Source of the DNA: Lepidodermella squamata
Lineage: Eukaryota; Animalia; Gastrotricha
Reading direction: 5' to 3'
DNA length: 64,000 nt
Assembly (NCBI GenBank): GCA_047495785.1
Contig: JBLDXI010000001.1
Coordinates: 2,666,001-2,730,000, forward strand
The first letter of the stretch is position 1. Every line of letters begins with the position of its first letter. This document shows positions 9,191 to 42,128 of the stretch, piece after piece. The position numbers were made by a program, and so were the translations under genes. The notes beneath the pieces are model-generated. The model did no database searches and had not been told where the DNA came from. It was given only the letters and a program-made list of their open reading frames with translations.

Positions 9191-9685
9191 ATTGTGTACA
9201 TTTATGAAGTTGTCTATTATTTATGCGATTGTGCGTGCTTGTTTTCCTGCACAGGTGATTTTTTTTAAGCTGGACTTTTTTTCAAACTGCCAATATTGTA
9301 AACCTTTTGTCTCGAAAAAATCAAAATAATGCCCGAATTTTCTAGCTCATCGTTTTTTCTCTGGATGACTCATCTCGCTACCTGTTCACCCGGCGATTTT
9401 TGTTGGCGTTTTATACCCGTGTTTCACTGAAGAAAGAAAATTGCCGGTTGTTGTTTTTTTAATCACTGCTCAATCAAATTTTGGTCATTTTAGTGCTGCT
9501 CATCGAACTTCCGTTTTACACTTCTGCCATGTTTTTAGCAATTCTCTTTTAATTGAAAATTGATACTTTGTACTAAAAATATTTGATGATAATTGATGAT
9601 GAATACATTTGTTTGCTTCGCGGTTTTTATACGAAGTCCTCAATTTTTTTGTCACAACGTAGAATTTTTGAGAATTAAAATCGAG

Positions 9686-13122: not shown

Positions 13123-13246
13123 ATAATTTTGTCTTTTAATTGAACTCAGCCTGGTTTCTTTTAGCTTTAAAAATACCGATTTCATGCAATTTATTTGTTG
13201 CATTTTTTTTAGGAGTTTTGATGTGATATTTTAGCAAGCTGAAGTA

Positions 13247-19200: not shown

Positions 19201-19696
19201 CCTTATTATTCGGTATTTAAGGAACCTTTTTTTTAATACCGAATGCTCTAGTCCTTTACTAATAATTTTGATTTTATTTATGTAATTTCAGACTACTGAT
19301 GCCTTGGCAAGCCCCGGCGATCTGCCCCCGCCAACTCTGCGCCCACCAGACCGCCACAAGTTGCCATTCTACGTCGAACGAATCATTCTACCCCTCGTCG
19401 CTCTGCTGCCTCCGGTCGCCCTGGCCCTAATCACCGACAATGTGTCGCTGTTGGTCGGCATAACCGGCTCTTATGCCGGCGCGTTTGTTCAATACCTGAT
19501 ACCAGCTGCTTTGGTGTATTTCGGCCGGAAACGACTGGCGGAGCTGGTTAAAGTTCTGCCCAGCGCAGCGAATGTCGCCGCGAAAAACCCGCATCAATCA
19601 CCCTTCGGCCACATCGTATGGCTGATTCTTGTCTGTGCCTGGGCATTGGTTGCTATCGGTCTCGTCACGGTCGATCATATTATCACTGGAAAATAA
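13247..19696 (+). CDS. TMEM104: Transmembrane protein 104 (SLC38-like amino acid transporter); exons 13247-13334, 14640-15407, 17963-18417, 19292-19696
   Basis: LTETGSTY...FNLIIGTG|ALALPYAF, YVVEAMAIGNA, YLYGDLAIYA, GPFAFFNVQKT, VYAFMCHHSLPSLITPI, LVGITGSYAG are TMEM104 signature motifs. Joins are in frame. Confidence 0.93.
15476..15904. mobile_element. Non-autonomous hAT (Charlie-like) MITE
   Basis: Perfect 13-bp TIR CAGGGCTTCTCAA / TTGAGAAGCCCTG. Imperfect 8-bp flanks AGTTGGAG / AGTTGGGA. GCGACCCCCAG subterminal motif. Confidence 0.8.
16000..16143 (+). mobile_element. Possible 3' end of a non-LTR retroelement with (CATAA)n tail
   Basis: GC-balanced segment ending in CATAACATAACATAACATTACATTA. 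No TSD identified. Confidence 0.35.
16400..17395 (-). mobile_element. Possible highly decayed LINE fragment (end of APE endonuclease and downstream)
   Basis: TARIIRRNNVTDHVSQYF resembles the endonuclease 'SGIIxxDISDHxPIF' motif. The rest is heavily interrupted. Confidence 0.35.
17407..17879. mobile_element. Foldback/Mutator-like MITE with ~85-bp modular TIRs and 9-bp TSD
   Basis: TTTTTATTA flanks both sides (17398-17406 and 17880-17888). The TIRs are built from repeated GGCTATTGGCACATA units and the palindrome GGCACATAATTATGTGCC, mirrored at both ends. Confidence 0.88.
18800..19198 (-). mobile_element. Decayed LINE ORF2 fragment (post-RT region, I/Jockey-like) in TMEM104 intron 3
   Basis: VFEPQLFSFP...DKFKKILILKHICKQRCG...ILAVLYIVFRTSCSYSGSA resembles 'IFDSKLxF.PHI...KxLNILKxL...WG.D...LLxLY...IRSxLDYG'. 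Confidence 0.5.
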
Positions 19697-20127: not shown

Positions 20128-21615
20128 ATGTTGTCCTCCTCAGCTTCATCGACAAATCATCAGGCAGATGATTCAGAAAAGCAGTACCATGGCTATAAGA
20201 TGCGCTGGTACATTCTTGGCCTGTACTTCATGATGGCATTCTGGCAGTCAGCCACATCCTCCTGCTTCGGCCCGATCGCGCCCGAAATAAATCCAGCTTT
20301 CGGCTTCACCCAACTCGATTTCGCGTTGTTCACAAATTATTTCAACATCGGATTCGTACTTCTCTTCGTCATCTTCGTTTGGCTTATCGAGAATAAGGGT
20401 CTCAGGGTGGCTGTAGTCATAACTGCCGCAATCGTAGCAATAGGATCTAGCATTCGATGCCTTCATATCGGCAACCCTGTATTCGATAAATTCTTCATCC
20501 ACCTCGGCCTGGCTATCATCGGACTTGCAAGCTCTGTTTCCTGGTTCGCCTGCACCACAGTCAGTGCAGTTTGGTTCCCGCCGCATGAGCGTAATATGGT
20601 AACTGCGATTTGCCTAACAGCGGGTAGTCTCGCGGCAACTTTCATGTTCGGTGTCGCGCCGGCTTTTCTTCACGCTTTCGAAGGCTCAGGATCACCGGAG
20701 GAAATACGAGCGGCAACTTATAAATTTCTGTATTTCCAAGCCGTTGTCGCGAATTTAATCCTTCTCGCGATTGTTTTACACTTCCCGTCCAAACCGCCGA
20801 CCCCTCCATCGCCATCAGCAGCTGTTGCTAGGATGCAGCTGAAAGACGGGGTGATCCATTTCGTGAAAAATCCGAATGCGCTACTGATGTTTGGTGCCAA
20901 TATTTGCGGCAATATTATCTCGACCTGGGCAGTTTATTTGCGTGAGTTGACGTAAACATTGCTTTATATCAAGAACCTCAAATTTCGCCCGTGAACAGCG
21001 CAAATTGTTGAAAATTACATGAGTGATACCGAAACTGGTTTGCTCGGTTTTGCTATGGGCCTAGCGACTATAGCGGCCACATATGGCAGCGCCGCGATTT
21101 TGTCTTTCCCGAGATTCGCCCCGAAATCTCGCCTAGCCGCAATTATTCTCGTATTTCTCGGTACTGCATGCCTGGTCCCGTTTGTATTCAGCCTTAACAT
21201 AACATCTCAAACATTTCTTACTCCGAGCAAAGTAAATTTTTGCATCATGAAATTTCCTGGAATTTATTTGTCTAATTAATAGCCTTTGATTTGGGCGACA
21301 ATTTTGGTTGGAATTCCGTTGGCTTCAGCGACGCAACCGGTTTGGTGGGAAATGACGTGTGACTGCATGTACCCGGTACCTGAGAGCGTAGTTGCAAGTA
21401 TTTTCAGTTTCGGCGCCTGCTTTTTTACCGTCATTTTACTCGTAATTATGATGTTCAACCAACTTGGCTTTATGTGGTTCAACTGGGTCTTGTTGGCATC
21501 TCAAGCCGCTATCGTACCTATGCTGATTTTCTACCGGCATAACGGGAAAAGAAGTACAGTCGATGAAAATGAGAACCAAATTAAACCTGATAATAATTAT
21601 CGTCCTTTGAATTAA
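20128..21615 (+). CDS. SLC49A4/DIRC2-like MFS transporter, copy 1 (introns 20942-20998, 21232-21282)
   Basis: YKMRWYIL, KGLR, IRC, SAVWFPPHER, FPSKPPTPPS and QPVWWEMTCDCMYPVPE motifs. Spliced frame is intact. Confidence 0.9.
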
Positions 21616-21837
21616 ATTTTATAATTATTATTGTTGGAAAAAATAAAGCTATGCTATTTTCACGCTGCAATCTAGGATGGTGCGTTATCTTTAGACGAGT
21701 CACGGGTACATTTTTTATCTAGAATTCCGTTTTTCGCGCCTAATGGCCCAGCCTGGAACTAAAAAGGGCAAAAAGCAAGTCGATAAAGTCTCGCATTCTG
21801 TTATACCCATTGTTTTGTTGCTGCTCATGAAATCATC

Positions 21838-23444
21838 ATGGCTGACGGGAAAAGAGTTGAAAAATTTGCGTCAGAATTTCCCGGCGACCTGCCGGAACTT
21901 AAAGTTGACCGATCGTACTCGGCAACAGCGTCGGAAAGTGGCAGCCATGCGCATTTTAAAGTCTACAGAACCCGGTGGTACATCCTGGCAATGTTCGGAA
22001 TCGTCGGAATTTTACAAAATATGGTTTACAGCACCTACAGCTCAATCGCGGTTTCAGCGAAATTAGCCCTGGAAATTACTGATACCGGTAATAAAAAAAA
22101 ATCAATTTTTTTCTCTAAAACCCATAAAATCCGTTTAGATTTTGCGTTGCTGACGAACTGGTACAACGTGAGCTTTTTGTTATCGGCCATTCCTTATATT
22201 TACATGGTCGAGGTGAAAGGGCTTCGAATGCCTATGACGACGACTATGAGCTTCATCGCTATCGGAGCGGCTGTAAGGTGTCTACACACCGGCGATAAAC
22301 AATTTGACAAAACGTTTTTACACCTCGGTCAAATTATTAATGGACTCGGAGCAGCTGTTCCGTGGTTTGCATGTACGACTATTAGTGCGGTTTGGTTTCC
22401 GCCCGATCAGAGAAATCTCGCGACAGCCATCGGCCTATTCACCGGCGGAATGGGTTCCTCTATCGCCTATATAATAGGCCCGGCCTTTCTCAACATTTAC
22501 CAGGGCTCCGGGAGTGTTGAAGAAACATACGACGCAATTTATAAGCTGTTCTACTTCGAAGCCTTGTTTTGTAACGGACTTCTATTTTTGACCATGGTTT
22601 ACTTCCCGTCGAAACCTCCAGAGCCGCCTTCGGTCACGGCGACGATTGAAAGAACGTCCTATATTGAAGGAATTCAGTTATTCGTGAAAAATCGATCAGC
22701 TTGGTTGATGTTTACAGTCTATATCCTAAACACGGTGATATCAACCTGGATTCAATACATAAGTATATTTTTTTAAATATTTTTCAATTTTTAAAATAAT
22801 TTTTTAGCTCAAATGGTCAATAGTCAAATGGATGAGACAGAGGCCGGGTGGTTGGGATTTACCATGACGGCGACTTCGATTCTTGCCGGGCCTATCCTGG
22901 CGGCTATTCTCAGCATCAAATTCTTGTCGCCTCACGCGCGACCAATCTCAATCATTTTGATACTAGCAGCTTGCGGCTGTTTCGGTCTCTTCATCGCAGC
23001 TGCTAATATTCCAGATCTGAATACTCTTCTCTTCAAACCGGTGCGCCTTTAAATTCAAAGAATTTTTAAAATTTGTTACGGAATTTTTTTATTCAGCCTT
23101 TGATCTGGGGCACCTTGGCCCCTTCGATAGCCCTAGCAACTGCTGCTCAGCCGATTTGGTGGGAAATGGCCTGCGATTGTTCGTACCCGGTCGCAGAATC
23201 TGTCGTTTCCGGCATTTTCAGCTTCGGCTCATGTGCAGTTTCGCTAGTCATTCTTTTCATTCTTATGATACCTGGCATTGGCTATTTATGGCTGAATTGG
23301 TTTATGCTAGGCTCGCAACTGCTTATTATTCCTCTTCTTCTCCTTTACCGGCACGATGGTCATCGATCTGCTGCTGATTTAGAGGGAGAAAGCCATGTTG
23401 ACTCAGACTCGCATTATCAAGACCAAATAGCTATTATCAATTGA
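21838..23444 (+). CDS. SLC49A4/DIRC2-like MFS transporter, copy 2 (introns 22088-22138, 22763-22807, 23041-23096)
   Basis: VYRTRWYIL, HLGQIINGLG, WFPPDQR, FPSKPPEPPS, EAGWLGF, QPIWWEMACDCSYP. Confidence 0.9.
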
Positions 23445-23669
23445 ATTTATGAGAATTATAATAAAGCAGATTTTTTCCATCTTTTCACCCGGTGTGTTTA
23501 GAGATAACAAAAATTCCCGTATCTCTTTAGAGCTCCGGTTTTTGCTGAGATAAAATTACAGCTGTAAAACGGAAACACCAGGCTGCACTGTTTTTTATAT
23601 AGAGGTCATAATTGACAAGTTAAAACGCTCTATGAAAATTTCGGCTGTCGTAGTTGAACCGAGCGTTTT

Positions 23670-25432
23670 ATGGCGGAAGAGTACTGCCTAAGCGAAACCC
23701 CACACAGTCTTGTTATGGATGTCGACGACCCTGGCTATGGGATTAGCTACGACCCAACAGCCCCGCGAGTTGTACGAAAACTGACCTTGGATGTCGACTT
23801 TCAAGTTTTCCCCGAAATCGGCGTTCCATCGACGTTAATCAATGATAATCTAGAGACCATCAGCCAGCAAGATAATGACATCCACAGTGACATTCATTAC
23901 GACATTAAAGAGGCGGAACATTACAAGGTCTACAGCACAAGGTGGTACATTTTGGCGATTTTCGCTGTTGTCGGAATCTGGCAAAATTTAGTCTACAGCA
24001 CTTTTGGGCCCATTTCAGACTCAGCTACTATTGCTTTGGAACTTACACAGACAGGTGAGAAATTAAATTTTCAAATTAAAATAAAAAAAATCTCATTAAT
24101 TTCAGATCTTGCTTTGCTGCCCAACTGGTACAACATCGCTTATGTCCTAAGTGCCTTTCCTTTCGTCTACATGGTCGAGGTTAAAGGCCTCCGGATGCCA
24201 ATGACTGCAACAATGGCTTTCTGTGCTGTTGGCGGATCCATTCGATGCCTTCACACCGGTAATCGAAGCTTCGACAAAGTTTTCCTACACCTCGGCCAGC
24301 TGATCAACGGATTCGGCGCTGCTGTACCCTGGTTTGCCTGCACAACTATCAGCGCAGTTTGGTTTCCACCCGGTCAAAGGTATTTCCGGCTAAATAAACT
24401 CCTTAAAAATGATAAATTTTATATCATTTTACAGGAATTTGGCAACTGCCATAGGGCTATTCGCGAGCAATTTAGGCGTGTCTTTGGCCTTCATATTAGG
24501 CCCGTCTTTCATTCAAATTTACAAGGGCGACGGAACGGAAGAGGAGCTGTACCAAGCGATTTATAAGCTTTTCTACTTCGAGGCCATTGTTGGAAACGCG
24601 CTACTTTTCATGACGGTTTTCTACTTCCCGTCAAGGCCGCCAACTCCGCCAAGTTTTACAGCGTCACAAGCTCGATATTCCTACTCGGAAGGCTTCGCTC
24701 AGTTCGCGAAAAATGGTCCGGCTTGGTTCATTCTTGCAATTTACAGCATGAATACTAGTAAATAATTTTAAATTTAATTTTAATTTTTTTTTTTAATATC
24801 GCTGATTTTTTTCAGTTTTTCAAACTTGGAACCAATTTGTGACCATGACCGTGAAGCCTGTTATGGGCGAATTTGAAGCCGGTTGGCTGGGATTTACAAT
24901 GACAACGGTTCCAATAATAATGGGCCCAATTTTGTCAGCATTCATCGCTCTGCCAAAAATTGCCCCTTACGCTAGACAAGTCTCAATTGTACTGCTGTCA
25001 ATGGGAGTATGCCTGATCGCCCTTTTCGTCTGCTCTGTCATGATACCGTCGTTAGAGGACACCTTGCTGAGTCGCGGCATTGTTTGGGGGACAATCATCC
25101 CAGCAGTCACCCTTTCAACAACGCCGCAACCGATTTGGTGGGAAATGGCGTGCGATCGCATGTACCCGGTTCCTGAGTCGATTATTTCGGGAATTTTCAC
25201 AGTCGGCTCGTGTTCAGTATCTCTCATTTTCCTAGTCATCCTGATGTTCCCACAGCTGGGGTTTAAATGGATCAACTGGATTCTACTTTTATTTCAAGCC
25301 GCGATAGTTCCTATGCTGATAATTTACAGGCATAAAAGTAAACGAAACGCAGCCGATCAAGCGAATCGCCCGGCCGAAGTCGACGTAAACAGTCTAAATC
25401 GTTATCAAAGCCTGACAAATTCTACTAGTTAG
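23670..25432 (+). CDS. SLC49A4/DIRC2-like MFS transporter, copy 3, long acidic N-tail (introns 24055-24105, 24380-24434, 24758-24815)
   Basis: VYSTRWYIL, TFGPI, HLGQLING, FPSRPPTPPS, QPIWWEMACDRMYPVPE. Confidence 0.9.
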
Positions 25433-26224
25433 AAAAAAAATCAATATATAGTTCAAAATAAATGCAATTATTTTGGCGTAATAACTTTTTCACGCTTGTT
25501 AAATTGAAATTCGAGATAACGACGCATAATATTATCTCGATAAGTGCTGCTGCTGAAAGCTTAGAGTGTAATAAGCTGATTTTTTATGAGTTCGCACCAT
25601 ATCCTAGGGAGGGAAAAAAATAGCACTGGCCAATTTTTTCTGACTCGCCAAAGCAGATCATTAGCAGGTTTTTTTTCGTGTTATAAATGTTTTATGTATA
25701 TGGTATAATGAAAGTCGGTGATCTTTCTTTTCTTACAACACACCATAATTTTTATTTCCATAAAAAATGATTAACAGTGCCATAAAATATAACTGCATGG
25801 TAATCACAAGTGCTTAGATTTAATTACGGGCTGCGAGCGGCATGGTGGCGGTAAATATTTGGGCAACACTTTCGCCGCAGCAATAAGCTGTCATTTAGCG
25901 CATGGCTCGGCTTTTTCATCCTCGTCCGTGTAAATAAAATAATATGCGCGGAGGGAGAGAGAAGTCGCTAATTTTTTCTGGGCAAACCGGATTATTAACT
26001 TGAAAAATTCTCCACGTGGCCATGTTTTTTGCAGTGCTCATCTGCTCATTATCTATGTACAAGTCAATCCATATAGCACTACACACACGTTAATTCAAGT
26101 TCTGGGCCTGCGTATTTTCCCTAGAGAAATGCGCAGACATCTTTTCATTCATTCAACATAATACTTTTTTCCTCAGAATTTTAATCAAGTTGAACTGAGA
26201 GCAGCGGACTCGTTTTCTGCCAAG

Positions 26225-27573
26225 ATGCGCTGTTGGGTCGTTAAATTTCTAGTACTCGGCATTTTCTTCAACGCTTTTCTCACCGCAATCGCGTTAATAC
26301 CCCTCTACCTGACAAAGGAATTCGGAGTTCCTTATGCTCGAGGTTTTGATCCGGTAATTTTTTAATTTTTCAATTTTCTGTGAAAATAAGTGCGGATTTA
26401 TTTTAGGCTGATAGTTCGATCGCCTTGTCGCTGAAACCTAACACGGTTTCAAGCAATGCGGCCACGTGGGGTTCTGCTTTTATGGCGGCGGGTGTCATTA
26501 TTCTAGTCGAAGTCATTTTGGCCCTCTGCCGCCAGCGGCGCCTTTTCAAAAGCTCCAGCCATGACGGATCTGAAGCGGCGACGGAGAAATTCTGCAAACA
26601 GGAAGACGCCTCTGGGCCTGAACCGACGACGAAGCAAATTTGGCTGAATACGCTTTTCGTCATTTGGCTGTTGATTGCTCTGCTGATGACCGGTTCCGGT
26701 ATCACTGGAACTGTGACGAATCTTGGCAAGATTTTTGTTGCAAGGTACTATTATATTAAGATCGGAAAATCGGATTTTATTGGAATTAATTATTTTTATT
26801 CAAAAATCGAAAATTAAAATTAAATTTGTTTTATTTTTACTAGACATTTTTTGAATTATTTTTCTTAAATTATTTTATCATAATTTATAATTCTTGATTT
26901 TTTGCTAATTTCTTTAACTAGGCCCCGTCCCTCTTTTATGCATTTTTGCCGCCCCGACTACACCGTGCTCAACACTACTGAATGCAACAAATGCGGCAGC
27001 TATTCAAAGCCCGGCCCACATTGGCCACTGTGCCCAAGTTGTCCGTTCATCGATGGCGAAACCGCCAACGACAAGGTGTGCAACCCTGTTGCATCGATGA
27101 AACCGGGCGATATGTGGAAATCATTCCCATCGGGCCATTCTTCCTACTCCATGTACGCAACTGTCTTCCTCGCCGTCTATCTCTACAGTCGTATGCGCGA
27201 GAGTGAGCTGATATCAAAGTATAAAAAATATTTTTAACATTTTTAAGATGGCTTATGAATTTTCGATTTTAGTTATCTAGTCACCCTGCACCCGCTGGTC
27301 ATTTTCGCAACTCTCCTGTTCGGAATTTTCACTGCTTTGTCCCGTGTTTCAGACCAGCGTCATCATTTGACTGATGTGCTAGCAGGGTCTATTTTGGGCT
27401 CGATCGTTGGTCTGATCATGGGCATCACGCTGGCTTTACCTCTGCTGCAGCGAGTCAAATCTAACAAGTTATTCTACTGCAACGCCGCTAATTGCAGCCG
27501 AAACGGTCATTGTGCCAATCTGAAAAACGACCTTGAATCCACTAATCACGCCGAGAAGAATGAATCGTTCTGA
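26225..27573 (+). CDS. Phospholipid (lipid phosphate) phosphatase, PAP2/PLPP family, 4 coding exons
   Basis: All three catalytic motifs are intact: C1 KIFVAR|PRP, C2 SFPSGHSS, C3 SRVSDQRHHLTD. GFDP|ADSSI follows TM1. Confidence 0.9.
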
Positions 27574-27798
27574 AGCCGATGAAAAAATTCGAAAAATATA
27601 ACCTCAATTTTCTTCCAAAAGATGCTTTGAAATCTGAGACCAAACAATTGTTCTTCTTTGTTTTTTATCAATCAAAAACCGCGCAGATATTATTGCAGTA
27701 TAGGCGTTTTCGTGTTTAGAATTTCAGAAACCTGATGGTGCCGCCCCGTGAGTCATAACGCGAATACAAACTATCAAAGTCTATGTGAGAAGTTCACT

Positions 27799-27864
27799 TT
27801 TATCTTTACTTTTACGAGAATAAAATTGCGAGGTTTATCTTGCGAGGGTTATCTCCTTCGATAA
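27799..27864. promoter_or_regulatory. Cluster of four GATAA/TTATC motifs upstream of MFS copy 4
   Basis: TTATCT x3 and CGATAA within ~65 nt, with TGAGTCA (AP-1-like) at ~27750. Similar clusters occur upstream of other copies. Confidence 0.45.
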
Positions 27865-27918
27865 GAAGACTGTAACCGCGAGCTGAGGTTGTCTAGACTC
27901 TAGACTTTGCACGCTAAT

Positions 27919-29505
27919 ATGGACCACGTGAGTTCTAAAAATTACCAAACCTTCTCCTCGCGGCCGTTTATATCGCTGAAAAACGATCAGATCCCAGCGA
28001 GCTACCGAACTTACCCGAGCAGATGGTACGTTCTATTTCTATACTCAAGCCTTGGAATGGCTTGCAATTTTGTATCGACAACGGTGAGCCCAATCGCCCC
28101 TCTGGCTCAGCAGGCATTCGGCCTCAATCAAACTGATATTAGCCTTCTGCCCAACTGGTTCAATTTTATGCTGATTATTCTCATTTTCCCCTACATGTAT
28201 TTCCTACAAATCAAAGGTAAGATGCGAAATGATCTTTCTCAACTCACATGAACCTTTTTTTCAAGGTCTTAGAATGCCAGTAGTAATGGGTGCATGCTTC
28301 ACTGCTGCTGGGGCGTTTGTGAGATGCTTGAATTCAAGCAACTCCAACCGGATGTTCGACAAGGCTACGCTTCATTTAGGTCAAATTATCAATGGAATCG
28401 GCGCACCTATTCTATGGTTCGCCTGCACGAAGTTGTCCGTTGTTTGGTTCCCACCCAGCGAGAGAATGGTCAGCACTACCATAGCCCTGTTATCGGGACC
28501 TGTCGGCGTCAGTTTAAGCTTCCTAATCGCCCCATACACTGTAGACAGCCTATCGAAAAATTTGGCAGTGAAAAACGGCGGCAATGTTGAAGATTACTAT
28601 GCAGATGCGATTCGTCAGCTTTTCTACGGGGTTGCGTTGTTATGCATTGTGTTATGCACGATGACTGTAGTCTACTTCCCATCTGCCCCTCCTACACCTC
28701 CGAGTTACACTTCTACAACAAAGCGGCATAACTTCATTCAGGGTTTCAAACAGTTCGGGAAAAGTCTGGACGCTTGGCTTATCTTAATTCTCAGCAGCGT
28801 TACAGGAGCCGTCTTGGGTATGTAATATGCCATCATGGATATAACGTTAATCGAAGTTTTACAGCCGGCTGGACTCTTTTTCTCTCAATCACCCTGAACA
28901 ACATCCTTGACAATGTGCAAGCGGGTTGGCTCGGGTTTGCTATGACTGTTACTTCTTTATTTTCTGGACCGGTAAGTCCTAAGAAAGGAGTGAGAAGCTC
29001 TCTTGCATTTGCTTCTTTCCTGAAGATCACGACTTTCACATCGCAGTGGTGGATTCACCGCTGCCCTCGAATCATTTGCGCTTGGATACTCGCAGTTGGA
29101 GCGGCTTGTACAGTTCTTTTCCTTATTGCTTCCGTCTTCATTCACTCATGGCTAACTGCGCCATTTTGCTGGGCAGTTCTGGTTACAACATCATTTTTCG
29201 TATCTGCAAATCAGCCAGTTTGGTGGGAAATGGCCTGTGAAGCGGTATATCCCGTTCCTGAGGAGATAGTTGCAGGGTGTTTTGCGCTCGGCTCAACATT
29301 AGTGTCTTCAACTTTTCTGATACTCAACGCGATTCCGTCGCTTGGCGCCGAATGGATCAATTGGTGCTTGGCAATTAGCGAGTGCCTCTGTGTTCCGATA
29401 ATTTTCTTCTACAGCGGAGCACGAAGACGTTTCGCTGATGATCAACTCGCCACTGCCAGATTGTTGCCTTCCGGGTCGTTGCGAGAAGAGCAGTCTCAAG
29501 CATGA
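27919..29505 (+). CDS. SLC49A4/DIRC2-like MFS transporter, copy 4 (introns 28217-28265, 28818-28864, 28972-29025)
   Basis: YPSRWYVL, WFPPSER, FPSAPPTPPS, QPVWWEMACEAVYPVPE. Confidence 0.9.
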
Positions 29506-29922
29506 AATTCTCCTGATGAGACATTGTTTAGAATCTGTGATAAAGCATTTTATCTAATAAACTTCCGCGTAGAATATGCAATATCCGCCTCCGATTTGGC
29601 CGTGAATAATGACGCTGACATGTTCTTCTCGGGTCTGCAGATGTTGACCATAAACGGTTCCAAGTCACGCTAAAAAATCGAGTTTATCAGTCATGCTAAT
29701 ACATTAGTTTGATAATGTACGGTAACAAAAAAAATGTGTTGGACTCTCTGTAGAACAGCTGCTTTTACCCAGAGGTATTGATTATACAGGGTAAAACTTC
29801 TCTCTCATTGCTACAGAAGATTAACTTCCTAGCATCTCTTTAAAATTCAGAGCACAATTACTAGGAATGGGGATATACTAGAATAGTGAAAGCGCCACTA
29901 TAGTTTCATAACTGCTTAGCTG

Positions 29923-31646
29923 ATGGAAGCTCTGAAAGCAACAAGGAACTCAATAGACGATGTAGTCGATTCAGAGCATTCAGGCCACTACAGGGTCTAT
30001 CGTCGAAGATGGTAACGAGCAGCTTTGAGATACGAAGTGTTATATGTGTATTGTTTATCCAAAGGTACGTGCTATTCGTCTTTTCAGCCCTTGGAACGGT
30101 GCAGAACATGACATTCAGCACCTTCAGCCCCATTTCGCAATTCACTGAGAAGGCACTCGGATTTGAACGATGGGAGATCGCGTTACTGGCTAATTGGAGC
30201 AATATTACTTTCTTGCTTGCGATTTTCCCTCACATGTGGCTCGTTCAGACCAAAGGTACAGATTCTATCAGCTACGCGATGATTTTTTCAGATTCATTTC
30301 TTTCCAGGACTTCGATTCCCGGTATTGATGAGTGCTGGACTGGTGGTCAGTATAATATTTTCCAACTATCCTTGCTCGTTGCTTTTACAGTTCCCGTTAA
30401 CAGGCCCTTGGATCCTTAATTCGATGCGTCAGCACCGGAGACTACAATTACCCAAGTCCTTTTTTCGATCGAGTGATGCTTCATCTCGGCCAAGCCTTGA
30501 ATGGCTTCGCTGCGCCTGTCCTTGGTTTCGCCTGCACGAAAATTTCAGCGGTGTGGTTTCCACCTTCGGAGCGAGCGATGAGCACGTCGATAGGATTAGT
30601 GGCTGGAAGCCTAGGCACTGCTATCAGCTTTGTAATTGGCCCGTACGCCATCACAGGATTGGCTACAAAGTGGTCAGGCGGGTTGAAACCCTTGCCGGAT
30701 GAATTGGCGGCAGCAATTTATTATTTGCTGTACGCCGAATTCATCGCATGTGTGATTTTATTTGCAATGACTTTAGCCTACTTCCCGTCAGAGCCGCCAA
30801 CACCACCGTGTTACACTGCAAGATGTGCCAGACTCGCATTTGGCAAAGGAATCGTTGAATTTGTGAAAACTAGGGATGCATGGGTTATTTTGGTTCTATA
30901 CAGCGTTTCCAGCGGAATTTTTTGTAAGCTATGGTAATTTTCGCATTATTGCTCTTGAATCTTCTTTTACTAAACCTTAAAGATGGTTGGACACAATTTC
31001 TCTCCATAAACCTCAAAGGAGTTATGGGGTCGATTGAGGCAGGGTGGCTCGGCTTCACACTAACGATCGCTTCAATCATATCCGGGCCGGTACTGCCATT
31101 CTTAAATTAATTTGGATTGTTATTACAGATTTAATTCTTCAGGCCACATCGGCAACGTCCAACTATTGGCTATATGGTCGTTTTCCAAAGCTAATTTGTG
31201 CCGGACTGTTGTTCATTGGTGCGGTTCCGGTGACAGTTTTCTTAGTTGCTAACCTCATGCCATCGATGCTCACGCCAGCAATATCTTGGATAACTTTAAT
31301 ACCCGGTGCATTTTTCACGAGTGCTTGTCAGCCAATCTGGTGGGAGATGGCCTGTGAAGCCGTTTATCCGGTACCAGAAGAAATAGTAGCCGGAATATTC
31401 TCTTTAGGAAATACTGTGATAACACTGGTATTTTTTGCTGTGTATTCGTTCCCGTCGCTAGGGACGTCATGGGCAACGTGGTGTTTAGCCATCAGTCAAA
31501 TTATTTGCGTACCATTAATATTTCTATACAGCGGAGCAACACGTCGCCTTGCCGAGGATAATGCTGGTAAATGTATTTTAGACGACGAACCTAGCGATTT
31601 TACTCCGGACAAAGAACAGGAGACGTCAGCGAGCATCGCCCATTAG
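29923..31646 (+). CDS. SLC49A4/DIRC2-like MFS transporter, copy 5 (5 introns)
   Basis: ATG at 29923 (MEALK...VYRRRW|YVL). HLGQALNG, WFPPSER, FPSEPPTPP, QPIWWEMACEAVYP. Introns start at 30012, 30256, 30346, 30924, 31090. Confidence 0.9.
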
Positions 31647-32075
31647 GTTCTTAATATTAAGTTATGAATTCACACGTCCTCTTAATTTTTCCTAAACTTG
31701 CAATAAAAGATATTGTCCGTGGTTCCGAGTTTGCATTACGTTGTTTTATATCAGAGTACTCCCTTTCGGTCCGTAATATGCATTGATTTTCCGACGTATT
31801 AACCCTGAAATTCTTTTTGGAGTGTCTGGAGATGATGAATGATTGACACGCTATTTCACAGCACAGAAGGAACACGACAAGAGATCAACAGCTTTCTAAT
31901 GTATTTTGTCATTTCTCTTCGTCCGAGGAGGATTCTATAGGGAGTTATGGATAGGTGTCGGAAAAGAGGACAGTGCCAGTCTGCATTAATAATACGAAAA
32001 ATCTTTGTGGGTACGCGAGTTGCAAATTAGATATATGTCCATAACATTAAGAGATTACTCTAAAATATTAAAAAA

Positions 32076-33656
32076 ATGGTCGATCGTGGAATGGAGGCGA
32101 GTAATTGCTACGAAACTTATAGCTCCAGATGGTATTAATCCTTATCTGCTATAATTATGTTTATTAATATTTGTCCCGACTACAGGTATGTCTTAGCTGT
32201 CTTCGCCATTCTCGGCATTGCCAACAATATGGTATCTACAACGTTCAGCCCTATTGCAAATCTTGCCGAAGAAGGACTCAACATGACTCAGACCGAAATT
32301 AGCATGTTGGCAAATTGGTACAATGTCATGTTCATAGTAAGCGTCTTTCCCTATATGTGGCTCCTCCAAATTAGAGGTTAGAATTGTATCCTCTTATTGA
32401 CTTTTTGGCTTAACCTTCATACCCTTTGAATAAGGTCTTCGAACACCCATCGTAAGCGCAGCCATTTTCATGGCTATAGGCAGCTTCATCCGATGCATTA
32501 ACACTAGCGGTCAAAATGTGGCACTCGACCGAGCGTTGCTGCACATCGGGCAAGCTGTCAATGGTATAGCTTCCTCCGTCTTATGGTTCGCTTGTACTAA
32601 AATATCCGCTGTCTGGTTTCCTCCTCATGAGCGAGCCCTGAGCACTGCTGTTGGGATGCTGTGTGGTGAACTCGGCATATCTGTTAGCTTCCTTGTCGGG
32701 CCGATAACTGTCAAAAGTTTAGCCGAGCGATGGACTACCGATGAAGAAAATGACGCAGTCAGTAAGCACTACGGACAGGCTATATCTTACCTGCTGTTTG
32801 CGGAAAGTGTCGTTTGCTTCCTCCTATGTGCAGTTGTAGTAATTTACTTCCCATCTGAACCACCTTCACCACCAAGCTTCACTGCTAAAACTGAAAGGCT
32901 CGACTTTGCTAACGGCCTCTCTCATTTCGTCAAAAATCGCGATGCCTGGGTGATTTTTGTTTTATTCAGCGTTTCATCTGCTGCATTTGGTAAGAAATGC
33001 CGCCCAAATATTGCAAAAGATTAAGCTATATCTTTTTGATAGCTGGTTGGACTCAGTTTCTTGCAATAACAATGAAAGGTATTATTGATGACGTCGAAGC
33101 TGGCTGGCTTGGATTCACGATGACGATAGCTTGCGTTGTATCTGGTCCAATATTTTCATTCACTGCCTATCGCTGGATAGAATCTCGGCATAACAAAGTT
33201 GTATGCGCCGGAATCCTCTTAACTGGTGCATCTATGACTGTCATTTTCCTAATTGCAAACGTATTCGTGAAATCTATGCTTTCTTCGGCACTCTGTTGGT
33301 CTACACTGATCATCGGCGTATTTTTCGTCAGCGCTTGTCAGCCTCTTTGGTGGGAAATGGCCTGCGAGGCTGCATATCCGATATCGGAACAAACCGTTGC
33401 TGGAATTTTCGCATTGGGTGGTACGAGTATAAGTCTGGTCATTTTTTCCATCTTCGCTATCCCATCGGCGGGGACTGAGTGGTCGACTTGGTTTCTGGCG
33501 ATTTCTGAGACAGCATGCGTTCCTTTGATATTTCTCTACTCTGGTAAGTGCCGGCGAACAGCAGAGGATCGCTGGGCCCGAATGCACTTGGCTGAGACCC
33601 AGCACAGTGCGGAGTGCGTGAGCCTCCTTGAAACAACCGATCTCAATTCGGAATGA
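32076..33656 (+). CDS. SLC49A4/DIRC2-like MFS transporter, copy 6 (3 introns)
   Basis: MVDRG...YSSRW|YVL, WFPPHER, FPSEPPSPPS, QPLWWEMACEAAYP. Confidence 0.9.
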
Positions 33657-33949
33657 ATCAGGCTAAATGTAACCTGTCATTGGTCCTTTTTTCTTTTCGC
33701 TTTTCTCGTGAATTAGCTATAAAGAAATAAATGAAGTAACTTCATGCGAACAGACAGTGGTATTCAACATTTTTATCGCAGCATAACCATACTTCGAAAA
33801 GTAAACATGAAAATGACAGAAAGCATTGATCGCGTTTAACATACGTAAAATTGTTTGCTCGAGCGCGTTTTGTGCTTACAGTGGATCATTAATTTGTTAG
33901 AAATTGTTTTAATCAGCCGCTAGTTTTTTGTGAAAAAGCCCAGTTGAAC

Positions 33950-35715
33950 ATGAAGATGGCCGATTACGATGAGGAAACACTCTATCTAGCGACAAGCAGG
34001 GATGAACGTTACAAGTCGTACCCAGCAAGATGGTTTAATTTTTTTCAATAATTTCTCCACTTCAAAATATAATAACCTCTATCAACCTTTCTAATCAGGT
34101 ATGTTCTCACCGTCTATGTGATATTGGGGATAGCCAACAACCTGATCTATTCCACATTCACTTCAATCGCTGAATACGCTGAGAGAGGCTTAAATATACA
34201 CCAGACTGAACACAGCTTGATTAGTAACTGGTACAACATCGGCTTCCTTGTCGGCGTCTTTCCCTATATGCGTCTGCTACAAATACGAGGTAAAGGGCTG
34301 TTGTCTCAATTAACTCAAGTTATAATCATGGCTGTCATTATTTTGTTAGGCATTCGGCCTGCTGTAATTTCTGGAGCTGCTTTTGTTGTAAATTTTCATG
34401 TTTTTCGTTCAAACCAGAGTAATATTCTCATCAATCTAAGGCATCTGGAGCTGTCATTCGATCTATAAACACAAACGGGAAAATTTTGATTTTTGACAGC
34501 GCAATGCTTCATCTTGGGCATGCTATCAACGGCCTTGCAGCATCGATTTTCGCTTTCGCTTGCACCAAAATATCCGCTGTTTGGTTCCCACCTTCGGAAC
34601 GTCCCTTAAGCACTGCGTTAGGCCTGGTTTCTGGTAATACGGGAATAGCGCTGAGCTTTGTGATAGGCCCCTACGCCATACGAGCGTGGGTTGAGGGAAC
34701 TGCGAAGAACCAAGAGGCATACGCCACAGCAATATATTACCTAATGTATGCTGAAGGCGTTGCCTGTTTGCTGCTGTTCGCCTTGACAATTGTATATTTC
34801 CCCAATGAGCCGCCATCGCCACCCAGTTACACAGCATCGAGTGATCGCTACTCATTCTTTGCCGGGCTTCTGGAATTCAGCAAGTCGAAAAATGCCTGGG
34901 TATTGCTTGCCATCTACAGTTTATCCTCCACAGCATTCTGTGAGTTTTATTTCTTTGGCCACAAAACTATACGAAAATTGATGTTCAGCATCTTGGACGC
35001 AGTTTATTGCAATAACGATGAAGGGGAAATTATCACCGGTGGAGGCAGGATGGTTAGGTTTGTTTGAATCTCGTGTTGCCCTCTACAAATTCGTACATCT
35101 CCATATTCCACAGGTTTCGCTCTTGTCAACGCAATGACTTTGTCAGGGCCGGTAAGTTGATGAGTGTTACCTTGAATAGTGTGTTCCCGTGTGATTAACT
35201 AGATTTTCTCGATAAAAGCTGATCGTTGGATGGAGTCTTACGCAAAAATAGTAAGCGTCTTGACACTATTGGCAGGGGCTTTGATGGTGTCCCTCATGTT
35301 AAGCGGCGAAGTGCTAAATATTGCCCAATTAAGCAGTCGCGAATTCATTTGGATTTCACTAAATATCGGCGCGTTTCTCGTTTGCGCGTGTCAACCTATT
35401 TGGTGGGAAATGGCCTGCGAGGCAGTTTATCCTGTGCCTGAAGAAATTGTTGCTGGAATTTTCGCTCTCGGAAGCACTATCATAGCCGTAATTTTTGCGG
35501 CCGTTTTCGGCATTACATCTCTCGGCACTCAATGGACAACGTGGTTTTTGTTAATCAGCATACTTTGCTGCGTGCCATTGGTTTACCTGTATAATGGTTC
35601 GTATCGGAGAACAGCGGAGGATCGAGCTAATGAGCATCTCGATGCAGAATCCCCCAAAGAGAATAAAAATAACGCATCTGATGAGTTGGAACAGCTTATT
35701 GAAAATGTGGAATGA
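33950..35715 (+). CDS. SLC49A4/DIRC2-like MFS transporter, copy 7 (6 introns)
   Basis: MKMADY...YPARW|YVL, WFPPSERP, FPNEPPSPPS, QPIWWEMACEAVYP. Confidence 0.9.
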
Positions 35716-36216
35716 AAAATCCGTTTGAACTGTATTCCCCTTGTCATTCTTTAAATTTTTCAATAATTATGATGATATGAGCTAATTTAAAGTTTGAAAT
35801 GGTTAATTTCAATAAAATCGTGGAAGTGCTAAAAACCGTTGAAATCGTTGGGAAATTGCGAGCCCCTTTAAGTGGATGCTTCAGACTCCGAAGCAACATG
35901 AATTTCCTTAGACTATCCGGTCATCCAATAATATTCACACTCGTTAAGCATTTAGTCTTTAGTCAAGTCGTCAGCACTTAAAGGAGCCTACTCGCATAAT
36001 AGCATTGCAGCGCCGCCAGACTCGGACTCAGCCATCAGGCTTGAGTCGCAGCCTCCAAAAAGTAAACACAGAAAGGGAAATTCATTGATCCATACTACGA
36101 TGCTTTACACGACTCCTCTTTCTTCATCATTTTGGAGATGCTTTAGTAAGCTCGTCCAATCTTGAATTTTCTGCTCGGAAATCTAAAATTTTAAGCGAAA
36201 ACATACACGCTGCATC

Positions 36217-37906
36217 ATGTCAGAATTAGCTATTGGTGATGAATGCGTATTTTCAGAAAACATATCCAGCGATGGAGGACAATACAGATCATATGCAACG
36301 CGATGGTCAGATATTTTCTATAGCTCAGCCTGTCATAATTTTTCCTCTAACTCGCACAGGTACATCCTCGCTCTCTTCTCAACATTGGGTATAGCGAACA
36401 ATCTAGTATACAGCACGTTTACTTCAATCGCTGAACACGCGGAGAAGGGTTATAACATGAAACAAACTGAGCAGAGTTTGGTTAGCAACTGGTATAACAT
36501 TGGTTTTTTCATCGGAGTATTTCCGTACGTGTGGCTTTTGCAAAGAAGAGGTAAAATTGAGCCCTGCTTTCTCTGATACAAAGCTTGCATTTATATATGT
36601 CATATCTAGGAATCCGTCCGGCAGTTGTTTCAGGGGCTGCTTTTGTGGTATGCTAACTTTTTATGACCAATTGTCTTAAAAGTGTTCGAATTTAAACAGG
36701 CTTCGGGAGCCGTCATCCGATCAATCAATACAGGAGGCTCGAACGAGATTTTCGACAACACAATGCTCCATCTAGGCCATGCAATTAACGGCTTGGCAGC
36801 TTCGGTCTACTGGTTTGCCTGTACCAAAATATCAGCTGTATGGTTTCCTCGCTCAGAGCGGCCATTGAGCACTTCTATTGGGTTGGCAACTGGAAACTAC
36901 GGCATAGCATTAAGCTTCGTGATAGGTCCCTACGCCGTGGATGCCTGGGTGGCCGGAACTTTGAAAGATCAAGCGGCTTACGCAACGGCGATTCATTACC
37001 TCTTGTATGTCGAAAGTATAGTATGCGTCCTACTGTTCGCTCTGGTCGTTTTGTATTATCCAAATGAGCCCCCAACGCCACCCAGCTACACGGCCTCGGC
37101 AGTACGTTACACGTTTTGGCAAGGTCTAGTCGCAATCACCCGATCCAAAAACGCTTGGGTCATGCTGATTGTTTACAGCTTCACCGCAACAGCATTCTGT
37201 AAGATATAGCCACATAACTTTTTATTGCAGCAATCACGTTGTTAATCATAGCTTCTTGGACTCAGTTCATAGCTATCACCATGAAGGACAGATTATCGGC
37301 CGTAGAGGCTGGTTGGCTCGGATTTGCTCTTATCAACGCCATGAATATTGCTGGACCGGTACGTCTTTTCCCTTGCTGAATTTGAAATTAATCGTGGGAA
37401 TATCTCGACAGGTATTCTCAATATGCGCAGATCGATGGATTGAGTCTTACGGAAAACTAGTGAGCGCTACGACACTTTTCATCGGTGGGGCGATGATTTC
37501 TTTGTTACTTATTGGGGATGTTTTTGACATCCCTTTCATGATCTCCAGTGAACTCTGCTGGATTTCCCTTGTCAGTGGTGCTTTCTTCGTTTGCGCTTGT
37601 CAGCCAATTTGGTGGGAAATGGCCTGCGAGGCAGTTTATCCCGTTTCTGAGGAAATTGTTGCGGGAACTTTCGCCCTTGGAGCTACCGTTGTTGCGATGG
37701 CCTTCGCTGCTGTTTTTGCAATTCCATCGTTTGGTACTCAATGGACAACGTGGTTCCTGGTTATTAGCGTCTTCGTTTGTGTGCCTTTGGTATATCTCTA
37801 CACTGGAACATGTCGAAGAACAGCGGAAGATCGGGCAAAAGAAAAATCCAAGCCATCGGACGGCGGGTCTGATGAGCTTGACAGCTTTTTCGACGATAGC
37901 CTCTAA
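36217..37906 (+). CDS. SLC49A4/DIRC2-like MFS transporter, copy 8 (5 introns; closest to copy 7)
   Basis: YATRW|YIL, WFPRSERP, YPNEPPTPPS, QPIWWEMACEAVYP. Confidence 0.9.
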
Positions 37907-38270
37907 TCTTCAGCTTTTAGCTGCTCAAATCTTTGATTCTTTACTCAATCACAAAATTGTCGCTAGCTATCAATTTCGGATTGCTAGTGATAGAACGTTG
38001 ACTGAAGCAAATGTTGTCCCAGTGATGCGACCTGTCAGTACCTTACTCGTAGCTCGTAGGTTTATTCTAAATTGGAAAACACCCAACCATAAGATTGCTG
38101 TCAGCATGCCAAACACCTTTTGGCTATTGCATCTCCTGAGAAAAATATTCCACACCCCATTTCCGACTTTATACTTTCCTCTTACTGTTTCGCGAGATAA
38201 AACGTGCTTAAAAGTCAGGCAATTCATTTTTTTTAAATTAGATCGAAAATAATTTTTCACAAGTGGTGTT

Positions 38271-39941
38271 ATGGAAGATAATGAAGATAAGGAGCAGATT
38301 CTTTCACTTGTTGAATCCGATGAAGAGAAAAAAGCATACAAGTCATACCCGGCAAGATGGTATTTAGACGAAGCTAATTGACAATCCCATTTAGAGTTAA
38401 ATTTTACATTTACAGGTATGTTCTAATGGTATATTCTCTGGTAGGAATGGCTAACAACCTGGTTTTTGCAACCTTCAGCACAATCGCGCACTTCGCTGAA
38501 ATCGGTCTTAATATGACTAAGTCGGAAATTAGTGCATTAAGTAATTGGTTCAACGTCATGTTCCTAATTGGAGTAGTCCCTTACTTATGGCTTCTCCACA
38601 ACAAAGGTACTTTTTGATCGCTATGAATGCGAAAATTTTATTGCAAGCCTATTCTAATCAGGTCTCCGGCCATCTATACTCCTCGCATCAGCTTTCATCG
38701 TAAGATTAACATTCAGTCGACTGAACATAGAAAATATTATCTCCAACATCAGGCTGTTGGTGCTGCTACTCGATGCATCCATAGTAACGGAAGAAATCCT
38801 TTGTTCGATACGATTATGGTGCATTTAGGCACGGCTATCAATGGTATGGCATCACCTGTTTTATGGTTCGCCAGCACCAAAATATCTGCTGTGTGGTTTC
38901 CTCCCAAGCAACGTGCTTTTAGCACCTCAATAGGGATGACAGCCAGTTATTTCGGGGTCGCATTAGCTTTCGTCATTGGTCCATATGCTGTAACTGCATT
39001 ATTGCAACATTCATCAGCAAAGGACCCACAAGACCACGCAGGAGCGATACATCAGCTTTTGTACGTTGAGGCCCTCGCTTGTTTGGCCTTACTCGCCGTA
39101 GTTGCAGCTTATTTCCCATCCGCCCCGCCAACGCCCCCGAGCTATACAGCTTCGTGTGATCGCAAGGGCGTCTTCGAAGGTTTCGCAACGTTTGCGAAAT
39201 CCAAAGACGCATGGGTAATTTTTATTTTGAGCAGCGTAGGTCCCGTCGCAATATGTGAGCCAAGTTGATAAGTTATAAGAAGCTTACTACAAATTGATTA
39301 TTTATTTTTAGTTGCTTGGACTAATTTCCTTGCGATAACGATGAAAGATTCAATGTCGGAAATTGAGATTGGATGGCTTGGATTTTCTCTGACTATTGCC
39401 ATGGCTATTTCAGGACCGGTTAGTTAACTTTACTCTTGATCAGAAGTAAACTAATTACTCTGAGCAGATTTTCTCCCTAGGAGCGCATAAGTGGATGGAA
39501 TCTCATGCAAAAATAGTCACAGTGACAAGCATGGCTATGGGTGCTAACATGGCAGCTGTGTTCCTCGTTGCCCACACTTACTTCCACGAGGCAATTAGTC
39601 CGACAATTATTTGGTTATCTCTGATCAGTTGTTCATTTCTTGTTTACTCTTGCCAACCACTTTGGTGGGAAATGGCATGCGAGGCAGTTTACCCGGTATC
39701 CGAGGAAACAGTCGCAAGCATTTTATCGGTGGGAACTATTGTTTTCTCAATGATATTTTTCTTTGCTTATGGTATACCTTGCGTCGGAACTGAATGGACT
39801 TCCTGGTCGCTGGTGATTTGCGAATACGCCTGTGTTCCATTGATCTTTCTGTACCGCGGAACCCATCGCAGGTTGGCAGAAGATCGAACGAATGATAATT
39901 CAAATGGTGGATACACCCAGGTTCTGAATAAAGAGGGCTAA
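38271..39941 (+). CDS. SLC49A4/DIRC2-like MFS transporter, copy 9 (5 introns)
   Basis: MEDNEDKEQIL...YPARW|YVL, WFPPKQR, FPSAPPTPPS, QPLWWEMACEAVYP. Confidence 0.9.
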
Positions 39942-40380
39942 ATATTTGTCAATGGCTTAAGCTGCTATTCGTACATTCATTGCTGGAAATTCCAATGAAG
40001 TATAGGTATAACTCAGTGGAATTCAAAAAGCTCACGGGAGTGAAGTAGAGTGCGAGGTCAGCTTTTATGCTCAAGCCAATTCTAACTGCTTCAGACTTGC
40101 TCTAGATGTATTTTCCCAATGATCTTTTGCTCTACAGGTCCTGGTAATTCAGAACATTTCGGTGGCTAGTGCATTCTATCATGAGCGGTATTGAAGATTT
40201 TATCAGTCGTCTCTCCAAAACACTATCAAGGACACGCTGTGAAATGATAAGAGACATAAGCCATTCCCTTAATCTTGGTAGAGGAGTGGAAAGGGACTTC
40301 TTCTACTTAGGGCGTCACCAGCAAAGATAATCACGTATTAGTCTCTTCGATTCCGATTGGTATTTTTGGCTGATAAAATT

Positions 40381-42128
40381 ATGACCGAGGAAAAAGCAAT
40401 AATGAACAACGATGGCGTTGGATACAGTAGTGACCATAAAATCCCAAACCAACTGGTCAATGCAGAAGTTAACTCTGGAAAAGGAGTTTTGGATCATAGG
40501 GTTCTGGAAACATCATCCTACTCTACCTACTGGAGTAGATGGTATGGTAGAAATATTACAACCCCTGTCGGAAAATATAATATTTTGCATTAGGTATGTC
40601 CTGATTTTGTACGCAGTCCTCGGAGTCGCCAACAACATGGTTTACAGTACGATAAGCCCGATTGCCAATTACGCTGAACCTGCCCTCGGTTTAACGCAAA
40701 CTGACATCAGCTTACTTGCAAACTGGTACAACATAATGTTCTGTGTCGGAGTGTTTCCGTACATGTATTTGGTTCAAAAGAAAGGATTAAGGATGCCAAT
40801 AGCTTCAGGAGCTGCTTTTACTGTGAGCAAAATTATTTTCTACTGCCAACAAGGCCCTTTGACATCTAATATTTAGGCCATTGGGGCTTTCGTTCGATGT
40901 TTGAATACTCACGGCCAATGTCCTAGTTTCGATACGGCAATGCTACATCTCGGTCAAGCTATTAATGGTCTAGCTTCGTCCATCCTTTGGTTCGCCTGCA
41001 CGAAACTTTCAGCCGTCTGGTTTCCACCCCACGAGAGAGCTATAAGCACCTCAATTGGGCTAGTCACTGGAGGCAGTGGGGTAGCCATAAGTTTCGTTGT
41101 CGGGCCAAATGTCGTCGAAGGTTTAGCTTCGAAATGGTCGGGAAATGACCCATCTCAAGAAGACTACGCAAATGCTATTAGATTTCTTCTCTACGGCGAA
41201 TGCATTGTCTGTTGCTTCCTATGTTTCCTGACGCTGATTTACTTCCCATCCGAGCCGCCAACACCTCCGTGTTACAGCGCTACGTCAGATAGATTCGAAT
41301 TCATCAAAGGACTGAAACAATTCTCCAAAAGTAAAGACGCTTGGCTCATTTTCGCACTTTACAGCGTTTCTGGAGCAGTGCTAGGTGATTTCGTCAACTC
41401 TGTTTCCTATTTAATCACTCATCGCGCTGATTTGTTTAGGGGGCTGGACGCAATTTCTCGCAATCACCGTCAAAGATGTCATGGGCGATATCGAATCAGG
41501 ATGGCTCGGCTGCGCGATTACAATTGCTTCTGTGATTTCGGGGCCGGTAACTATCTTTTGATAAATAATTTACTTTTTCTATCTTCAGCATTTTCTTTGA
41601 CAGCTGCTGTCCCTAACAACCAAGTTCTGGATTGAACGACATGCAAAAACTGTTTGCACTGCCATGATATTCATTGGTGCCAGCTGTATGACAGTTTTCT
41701 GGGTGTCAGAGGCGTTTGTCCGCTCTATGCTTTCAGCTGGGCTTTGTTGGGGAACGCTAGTACCTGGGGCTTTATTCGTCACGGCTTGCCAGCCGATGTG
41801 GTGGGAGATGGCATGCGAAGCAGCTTACCCAGTACCCGAGCAAATCGTGGCTGGAATTTTCGCGCTGGGAAGCACGGCTTTCAATGTCGTTTTCTTTCTA
41901 CTCTACTCTTTTCCGCAACTTGGAACTCAGTGGGCTAATTGGTGTCTGGCTATCAGCTTGATGGGCTGCGTGCCCATAATTTTCTTCTACAGCGGGCAAG
42001 CGCGACGGCTAGCCGATGATTGCAGAGCCGAAGAACAGCGACAAGCCGCGATTAATCAGAGCGGAAATTACTCCAAACTGAACGACTCGTGTTATCCAAA
42101 TGCTTTTCAAGAAAATGTCCAACCATAA
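40381..42128 (+). CDS. SLC49A4/DIRC2-like MFS transporter, copy 10 (4 introns)
   Basis: YWSRW|YVL, KGLR, WFPPHER, FPSEPPTPP, QPMWWEMACEAAYPVPE. Confidence 0.9.

Follow-up and report, generated by a model that had tools for sequence, protein, structure and literature searches.

A 64,000-nucleotide stretch of the genome of the gastrotrich Lepidodermella squamata (assembly GCA_047495785.1, contig JBLDXI010000001.1, forward-strand positions 2,666,001 to 2,730,000; hereafter the window, with coordinates counted from its first letter) contains, on the + strand at 20128-42128, a tandem array of ten intact, intron-containing genes for SLC49 (FLVCR/DIRC2-like) transporters of the major facilitator superfamily (MFS). 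The tryptophan conserved in the first transmembrane helix (TM1) of SLC49 proteins is absent from all ten copies, in which position 19, counted from the R-W pair at the start of TM1, is occupied by Ser, Tyr or Phe. Each predicted gene model is a complete ATG-to-stop frame of 459-532 amino acids (aa) with 2-6 GT-AG introns of 45-66 nucleotides (nt), and a PAP2-type gene separates copies 1-3 from copies 4-10. The genes, with their position-19 residues and TM4 motifs, are as follows.

20128..21615, + strand, copy 1: 459 aa; 2 introns (20942-20998, 21232-21282); Ser44 (TCC, 20257-20259); TM4 VSWFACT
21838..23444, + strand, copy 2: 484 aa; 3 introns; Tyr64 (TAC, 22027-22029); TM4 VPWFACT
23670..25432, + strand, copy 3: 532 aa; 3 introns; Tyr109 (TAC, 23994-23996); TM4 VPWFACT
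26162..27573, + strand, PAP2-type lipid phosphate phosphatase gene (non-transporter): Pfam PAP2 at 26902-27237 and 27337-27573; identified by tblastn with a relative's PAP2 and the adjoining open reading frame (ORF)
27919..29505, + strand, copy 4: 478 aa; 3 introns; Ser53 (TCG, 28075-28077); TM4 ILWFACT
29923..31646, + strand, copy 5: 482 aa; 5 introns; Phe47 (TTC, 30114-30116); TM4 VLGFACT (Trp to Gly)
32076..33656, + strand, copy 6: 471 aa; 3 introns; Ser36 (TCT, 32235-32237); TM4 VLWFACT
33950..35715, + strand, copy 7: 476 aa; 6 introns; Tyr45 (TAT, 34148-34150); TM4 IFAFACT (Trp to Ala)
36217..37906, + strand, copy 8: 472 aa; 5 introns; Tyr47 (TAC, 36409-36411); TM4 VYWFACT
38271..39941, + strand, copy 9: 466 aa; 5 introns; Phe47 (TTT, 38465-38467); TM4 VLWFAST
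40381..42128, + strand, copy 10: 509 aa; 4 introns; Tyr71 (TAC, 40643-40645); TM4 ILWFACT

The models were assembled by hand from splice-site and frame constraints, and every internal intron was recovered by our own spliced protein-to-DNA aligner, run with a different paralogue as guide each time, with mismatches only in the unconserved tails. Because each gene carries 2-6 very short introns, a plain ORF scan yields only fragments. In the R-W anchor, the codon for Trp is interrupted by a phase-2 intron in copies 5-10 (+ strand: 30012-30064, 32132-32185, 34033-34098, 36306-36359, 38360-38415 and 40542-40593, respectively) and not in copies 1-4, so that in the former the motif becomes visible only after splicing, when R-W-Y-[IV]-L is found in all ten copies.

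Joined full-length proteins from the window were used only for alignments and trees, with the database, family and structure searches taking single exons, intronless relatives and database proteins as queries. Exons of copies 1, 2, 4, 6 and 10 scored 47-56 bits against Pfam MFS_1 (PF07690; cut-off 33.4). The AlphaFold2 model of copy-1 exon 1, which encodes the N-domain, consists of six long helices (mean predicted local distance difference test score 91.2, predicted template modelling score 0.86), and all of its top structural matches in the PDB are MFS transporters. It superposes best on the cryo-EM structures of FLVCR1 and FLVCR2 (Z ~28, root mean square deviation 1.9-2.3 Å over ~249 residues), with the next MFS family at Z ≤20.8, and the same two proteins are the sole PDB sequence matches below 1e-3. 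A first word-index search for relatives returned only four distant matches. The named proteins retrieved by word index are one from Tigriopus ('similar to dirc2') and one from Amphiura ('SLC49A4 homolog'), and DIRC2/SLC49A4-like proteins surround the array clade on the tree described below. The MFS/SLC49 signature motifs GLR, WFPP, ER, PPxPPS and YPxxE are invariant in all ten copies. By these sequence and model comparisons, the array encodes predicted 12-TM MFS transporters that belong to SLC49, with SLC49A4/DIRC2 as the nearest branch. Since fold, sequence and relatives place the proteins within SLC49, yet the TM1 Trp and the features of the FLVCR choline site are missing, the genes are classed as a divergent SLC49A4-like subfamily, neither FLVCR-type nor proven DIRC2-type.

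The residues at position 19 in the spliced models of copies 1-10 are S,Y,Y,S,F,S,Y,Y,F,Y, identical to the list given in a first-pass annotation made from the DNA letters. That annotation had also equated the site, without gaps, with W125 in the NAFQW string of FLVCR1, and this holds, as do the strings it quoted: TM1 aligned gap-free by HMMER to human FLVCR2 (R84...W102) and FLVCR1 (R107-F108...NAFQW, W125), and in three independent alignments the ungapped stretch extends from the R-W/F anchor, across position 19, as far as the G-P/S-I motif. In a MAFFT alignment position 19 falls in the Trp column of 117 relatives. The structural superposition of the copy-1 N-domain, which the annotation had named as a check on the assignment, agrees, with the offsets of the aligned ranges (19↔100 for FLVCR1, 19↔77 for FLVCR2) keeping residue 44 of copy 1 on W125 and W102. 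In the model Ser44 is the final residue of the first helical segment of TM1 and is followed by a two-residue break. In the structural papers on the FLVCR proteins, the TM1 tryptophan is presented as the key residue, conserved and coordinating the substrate; W125 of FLVCR1 and W102 of FLVCR2 lie above choline and make the cation-π contact together with Y349 and Y325, and transport is reduced in the W125A and W102A mutants (PMC11168923).

Trp occupies this column in 89% of the 117 wider-family proteins (145-sequence alignment) and in 122 of the 142 top hits covering the column when HMMER was run exhaustively with P0005, a protein of the array's clade taken from the database; the Tyr-bearing matches were the very top hits of that search, that is, its own clade. 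Whether invertebrate DIRC2/SLC49A4 homologues commonly lack the residue had been raised as a point that would undermine the argument; they do not, Trp being retained by the nearest named homologues (Nematostella, Tigriopus 'similar to dirc2' and Amphiura 'SLC49A4 homolog') and by 86-89% of relatives overall. Within the window, each Ser and Phe codon is one base from TAY. The annotation's statement that most copies carry a Trp in TM4 is likewise borne out by the ten models, in which it is gone only from copies 5 (Gly) and 7 (Ala).

Two queries, an exon of the array and the Amphiura protein, were run against the animal's own 121-Mb assembly; they gave identical loci and a genome total of 17-18 such genes. 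Outside the window these are as follows.

C1:1.21 Mb: two genes
C1:1.50 Mb: three genes
C48 and C10: a near-identical pair
C17: one gene

Spliced models of these genes have Tyr at position 19 in all (7-8 members) except C17, which has Trp. The database relatives of single members all come from ENA metagenome assemblies, and from one animal, whose proteins are 55-73% identical to copy 3, copy 10, C48, C1b, C1a and C17 and eight of which have Tyr at position 19. A syntenic contig of this relative carries laminin-β, Nup85, an Aa_trans amino-acid transporter, MFS, PAP2, MFS, MFS and Maelstrom, in that order. The PAP2 gene, equally placed in both animals, marks the ancestral layout of the array, and the transporters around it number 1+2 in the relative, all three with Tyr, versus 3+7 in the window.

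A maximum-likelihood tree of 45 proteins (LG+G4) placed every non-Trp protein in one 22-member clade (support 100/98), sister to C17 with its orthologue P0015 (100/99). Within the clade lie three subclades: copies 1-3 with relA (100/100), the C1a/C1b and metagenome genes (100/99), and copies 4-10 with relB and relC (100/100). Copy 3 is sister to relA, and copy 10 is the window copy closest to relB and relC. Parsimony required six state changes at position 19, with W to Y once at the base, followed by gains of Ser in three copies (1, 4 and 6) and of Phe in two (5 and 9); the changes from Tyr are confined to the window array. Tyr is invariant in all 12 other clade members, the relative's three array genes among them, and none of the 40 columns that these 12 proteins hold constant has changed as often in the window as position 19 (five changes and three residues, the next column having three changes). 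On this reconstruction loss of the Trp was a single event that preceded growth of the array, and only the later changes to Ser and Phe are specific to the array. The first-pass annotation had held that Trp was replaced in all ten copies and the pocket repeatedly remodelled; the repetition survives as several later Tyr-to-Ser/Phe changes, and the replacement of Trp itself moves back to a single event in the ancestor of the 22-member clade.

Further sites equivalent to the FLVCR2 ligand site were located by HMMER alignment of an intronless clade member and then transferred to the family alignment, with the following result.

Q191 site: S/A in copies 1-10; small (G/A/S) throughout the SLC49A4-like family too
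TM4 Trp site, three residues after Q191: W in eight copies, G and A in the others; mostly M/F/L in the family
F324 site: I/V/A in the window copies
Y325 site: I,I,F,L,F,F,F,F,I,L in copies 1-10; Tyr in the C1a/C1b genes
G422-F423 site (TM10): W-W in all ten copies; F/Y in the family
Q447 site (TM11): C,C,C,T,T,T,T,T,I,T in copies 1-10; Asn in 72% of the family and in C17

The array retains no residue of the FLVCR choline site (W102, Q191, F324/Y325 and Q447 in FLVCR2). It has lost several more residues that the family conserves, including the second TM1 Trp, a loop Trp, the Gly of the TM2 'NWG' and an Asp conserved in 96% of the family. Judged from these alignments, the whole clade has a re-made cavity, which the array appears to vary further.

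The ten copies share 42-67% protein identity with one another, copy 8 being the closest paralogue of copy 7 (67%). Nei-Gojobori comparison of every pair, including copies 7 and 8 and copies against the relative's genes, gave proportions of synonymous differences (pS) of 0.72-0.85, which is saturated, and of nonsynonymous differences (pN) of 0.20-0.38. The ten genes thus appear, from their coding sequences, to be old duplicates under selective (purifying) constraint. An assembly artefact or recent duplication was considered as the source of the array and rejected on the grounds of this protein divergence and the saturated synonymous sites.

The history suggested by these comparisons would begin with a DIRC2-like ancestor that multiplied in this animal lineage. 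One branch, with at least 17 genes in this genome, would have exchanged the Trp lid of TM1 for Tyr while gaining aromatics in other helices that line the cavity, a Trp in TM4 and the WW pair in TM10. The array flanking PAP2 would then have grown from ~1+2 to 3+7 genes, and during or after this growth the TM1 Tyr would have changed to Ser (copies 1, 4 and 6) or Phe (copies 5 and 9) by single-base steps on 3-5 occasions, alongside loss of the TM4 Trp to Gly or Ala and divergence of pocket-equivalent sites in TM7 and TM11. If, as we infer, TM1 still contributes this residue to the wall of the substrate site, an aromatic lid of reduced size would persist with Tyr and Phe, and Ser would open the lid and make it polar, such that the paralogues may accept different small solutes. 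The changing sites in TM1, TM4, TM7 and TM11 within the array would fit diversification of the pocket, a classical route for a duplicated transporter, and substrate divergence among the paralogues is plausible from the sequences. The descriptive part of this account is regarded as very secure. The account as a whole, from the non-Trp clade through expansion of the array to pocket substitutions that probably alter the substrates of the paralogues, is favoured with moderate confidence. A bolder formulation, in which the non-Trp clade is an undescribed SLC49 subfamily with a rebuilt aromatic cavity for a solute class other than choline or pyridoxine, and in which the TM1 lid together with TM4, TM7 and TM11 sets paralogue-specific ranges, is put forward tentatively.

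Several points weigh against reading the substitutions as altered specificity. That the side chain of position 19 faces the cavity is taken from homology to the FLVCR proteins. Q191, Y325 and Q447 are unconserved even in canonical SLC49A4-like proteins, so that beyond the TM1 Trp the logic of the FLVCR pocket transfers by position only. Approximately unbiased (AU) tests did not reject trees in which copies 4 and 6 (p 0.17) or copies 5 and 9 (p 0.23) form clades, and the secondary changes consequently number 3 to 5, not firmly 5. Finally, synonymous saturation means that dN/dS and site models are not meaningful, which leaves room for neutral relaxation at position 19. This last point bears on the chief competing explanation, according to which constraint was relaxed with the substrate unchanged, Tyr, Phe and Ser being nearly neutral in redundant duplicates that differ mainly in expression or cellular location. 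Such an explanation is consistent with the relocation of aromatics (TM4 Trp in 8 of 10 copies, TM10 WW in 10 of 10), with the degeneration in the array of many other family-conserved columns, such as the second TM1 Trp, the loop Trp and the 96%-conserved Asp, with the variation of N- and C-terminal tails and short sorting-like motifs between copies, and with the fact that saturation rules out selection tests. It fits less well with the strict invariance of Tyr in 12 of 12 clade members outside the array, where the site is apparently still constrained, and with the position of this column as the most changed of 40 otherwise invariant ones; relaxation is accordingly considered a real possibility, if not a probable one.

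Early pseudogenization of some unexpressed or decaying copies could also produce odd pocket residues, and copy 1 does sit on the longest terminal branch (0.88) and lacks several conserved residues that no other copy has lost. All ten frames, however, are complete with intact GT-AG introns, pN is only 0.20-0.38 at saturated synonymous sites, which indicates frames long kept open, and the GLR, WFPP, ER, PPxPPS and YPxxE motifs are invariant throughout, making decay improbable. Misalignment, by which position 19 would not be equivalent to W125/W102 at all, could be entertained at a sequence identity of only ~17-18% to FLVCR1/2, but the three independent gap-free HMMER alignments from anchor to G-P/S-I motif, the placement by MAFFT in the Trp column and the concordant structural offsets for both proteins render it very unlikely indeed.

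Of the characterized systems, SLC49A4/DIRC2, a lysosomal exporter of pyridoxine powered by H+ (PMC9719028), is the nearest named family, equal in length and sharing RRWY, GLR, WFPP-ER, YFPSKPPxPPS and YPxxE with the array. Canonical SLC49A4 has Trp at position 19, a second Trp three residues on, G in the TM2 'NWG' and N at the TM11 site, whereas the array has S/Y/F, F/Y/V/I, Y/F/S and C/T/I at these four sites, in addition to the TM4 Trp and TM10 WW, and belongs to a set of 17-18 copies in this genome. Among solved structures, the closest in both sequence and fold are FLVCR1 and FLVCR2 (SLC49A1/A2), uniporters of choline and ethanolamine (PMC11168923); their TM1 aligns gap-free, but they differ from the array by W to S/Y/F, Q191 to S/A, Y325 to I/F/L and Q447 to C/T/I. 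Because no residue of their choline site is kept, transport of choline by the array proteins in the manner of FLVCR appears unlikely. The substrates of SLC49A3 and SLC49A4 are debated, with pyridoxine and heme among the proposals. Caenorhabditis elegans has eight SLC49A homologues, including HRG-13/14, proposed to be heme exporters (bioRxiv 10.64898/2026.07.31.742071). Set side by side by description, this is likewise a lineage-specific multiplication of SLC49 in a small invertebrate with new substrates proposed; L. squamata differs in having about twice as many genes, mostly in tandem clusters, and clade-wide loss of the TM1 Trp.

At least 17 genes, forming a natural clade, dispense with the TM1 Trp, and one array within the clade samples Tyr, Phe and Ser with the rest of the transporter intact, providing ready-made variants for probing the role of the TM1 residue outside FLVCR1/2. 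Were the clade indeed an undescribed subfamily, the array would amount to a natural mutational series for SLC49 selectivity. The locus also illustrates how a small, compact animal genome with introns of ~50 nt can multiply one type of solute carrier. Expansion and pocket divergence of duplicated MFS/SLC genes are a common pattern, and nothing here is mechanistically unexpected.

Upstream of the array, at 3538-19693, lie genes for laminin-β (3.5-9.2 kb), Nup85 (10.3-13.1 kb) and Aa_trans (13.2-19.7 kb), in the same order as on the relative's contigs and with 45-71% protein identity to its proteins. The window's laminin-β exon reaches at most 37% identity to a named protein, its hits being scattered among fish, a nematode and a coral. 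The relative's downstream Maelstrom gene had no match within the window, and no Rfam family matched there. A single scan of metagenome contigs for closer relatives of the transporters, made with the TM4-TM6 exon alignment, gave nothing above 36% identity. A search for nematode SL1 RNA gave no hit, nor did it in the control genomes. The SLC49-like genes at C48:507.7-509.1 kb and C10:1932.1-1933.4 kb encode proteins two residues apart and represent either haplotigs or a very recent segmental duplication.

At the 96%-conserved Asp, which lies in the TM8-TM9 loop (column 346 in copy-10 numbering; the D of FLVCR2 'WLDRSK'), copies 1-10 read A,S,A,H,Y,E,E,E,E,E, and C17 keeps Asp. An N-terminal [DE]xxxL[LI] dileucine, which in human DIRC2 serves lysosomal targeting, was found in none of the ten copies, the motif being too short to carry weight. 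A C-terminal [DE]xxxL[LI] is present in copies 6 (ECVSLL, ~33.6 kb) and 7 (ELEQLI, ~35.7 kb) only, and YxxΦ occurs near the C terminus in copies 1, 3, 9 and 10, motifs so short being often expected by chance.

Neighbouring genes of the array on the same strand are separated by 222-501 nt (e.g. 21616-21837, 23445-23669 and 29506-29922). AATAAA or ATTAAA lies 16-96 nt past the stop codon in copies 1-7; neither hexamer occurs in the 250 nt that follow copies 8-10. Three introns, 51-54 nt long, keep the frame and contain no stop (22088-22138 in copy 2, 24055-24105 in copy 3 and 28972-29025 in copy 4), and an ORF scan therefore reads them as false insertions of 17-18 residues; a like error is seen on the metagenome contigs of the relative, whose genes were called in prokaryote style, with P0014 having a read-through stretch in mid-protein. 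The TM7 intron of copy 3 is shifted by 9 codons relative to copies 1 and 2; an additional intron interrupts copy 7 at 35058-35113, and the one after 'SGP' is missing from copy 6. These differing positions reflect intron gain, loss or sliding inside one tandem family.

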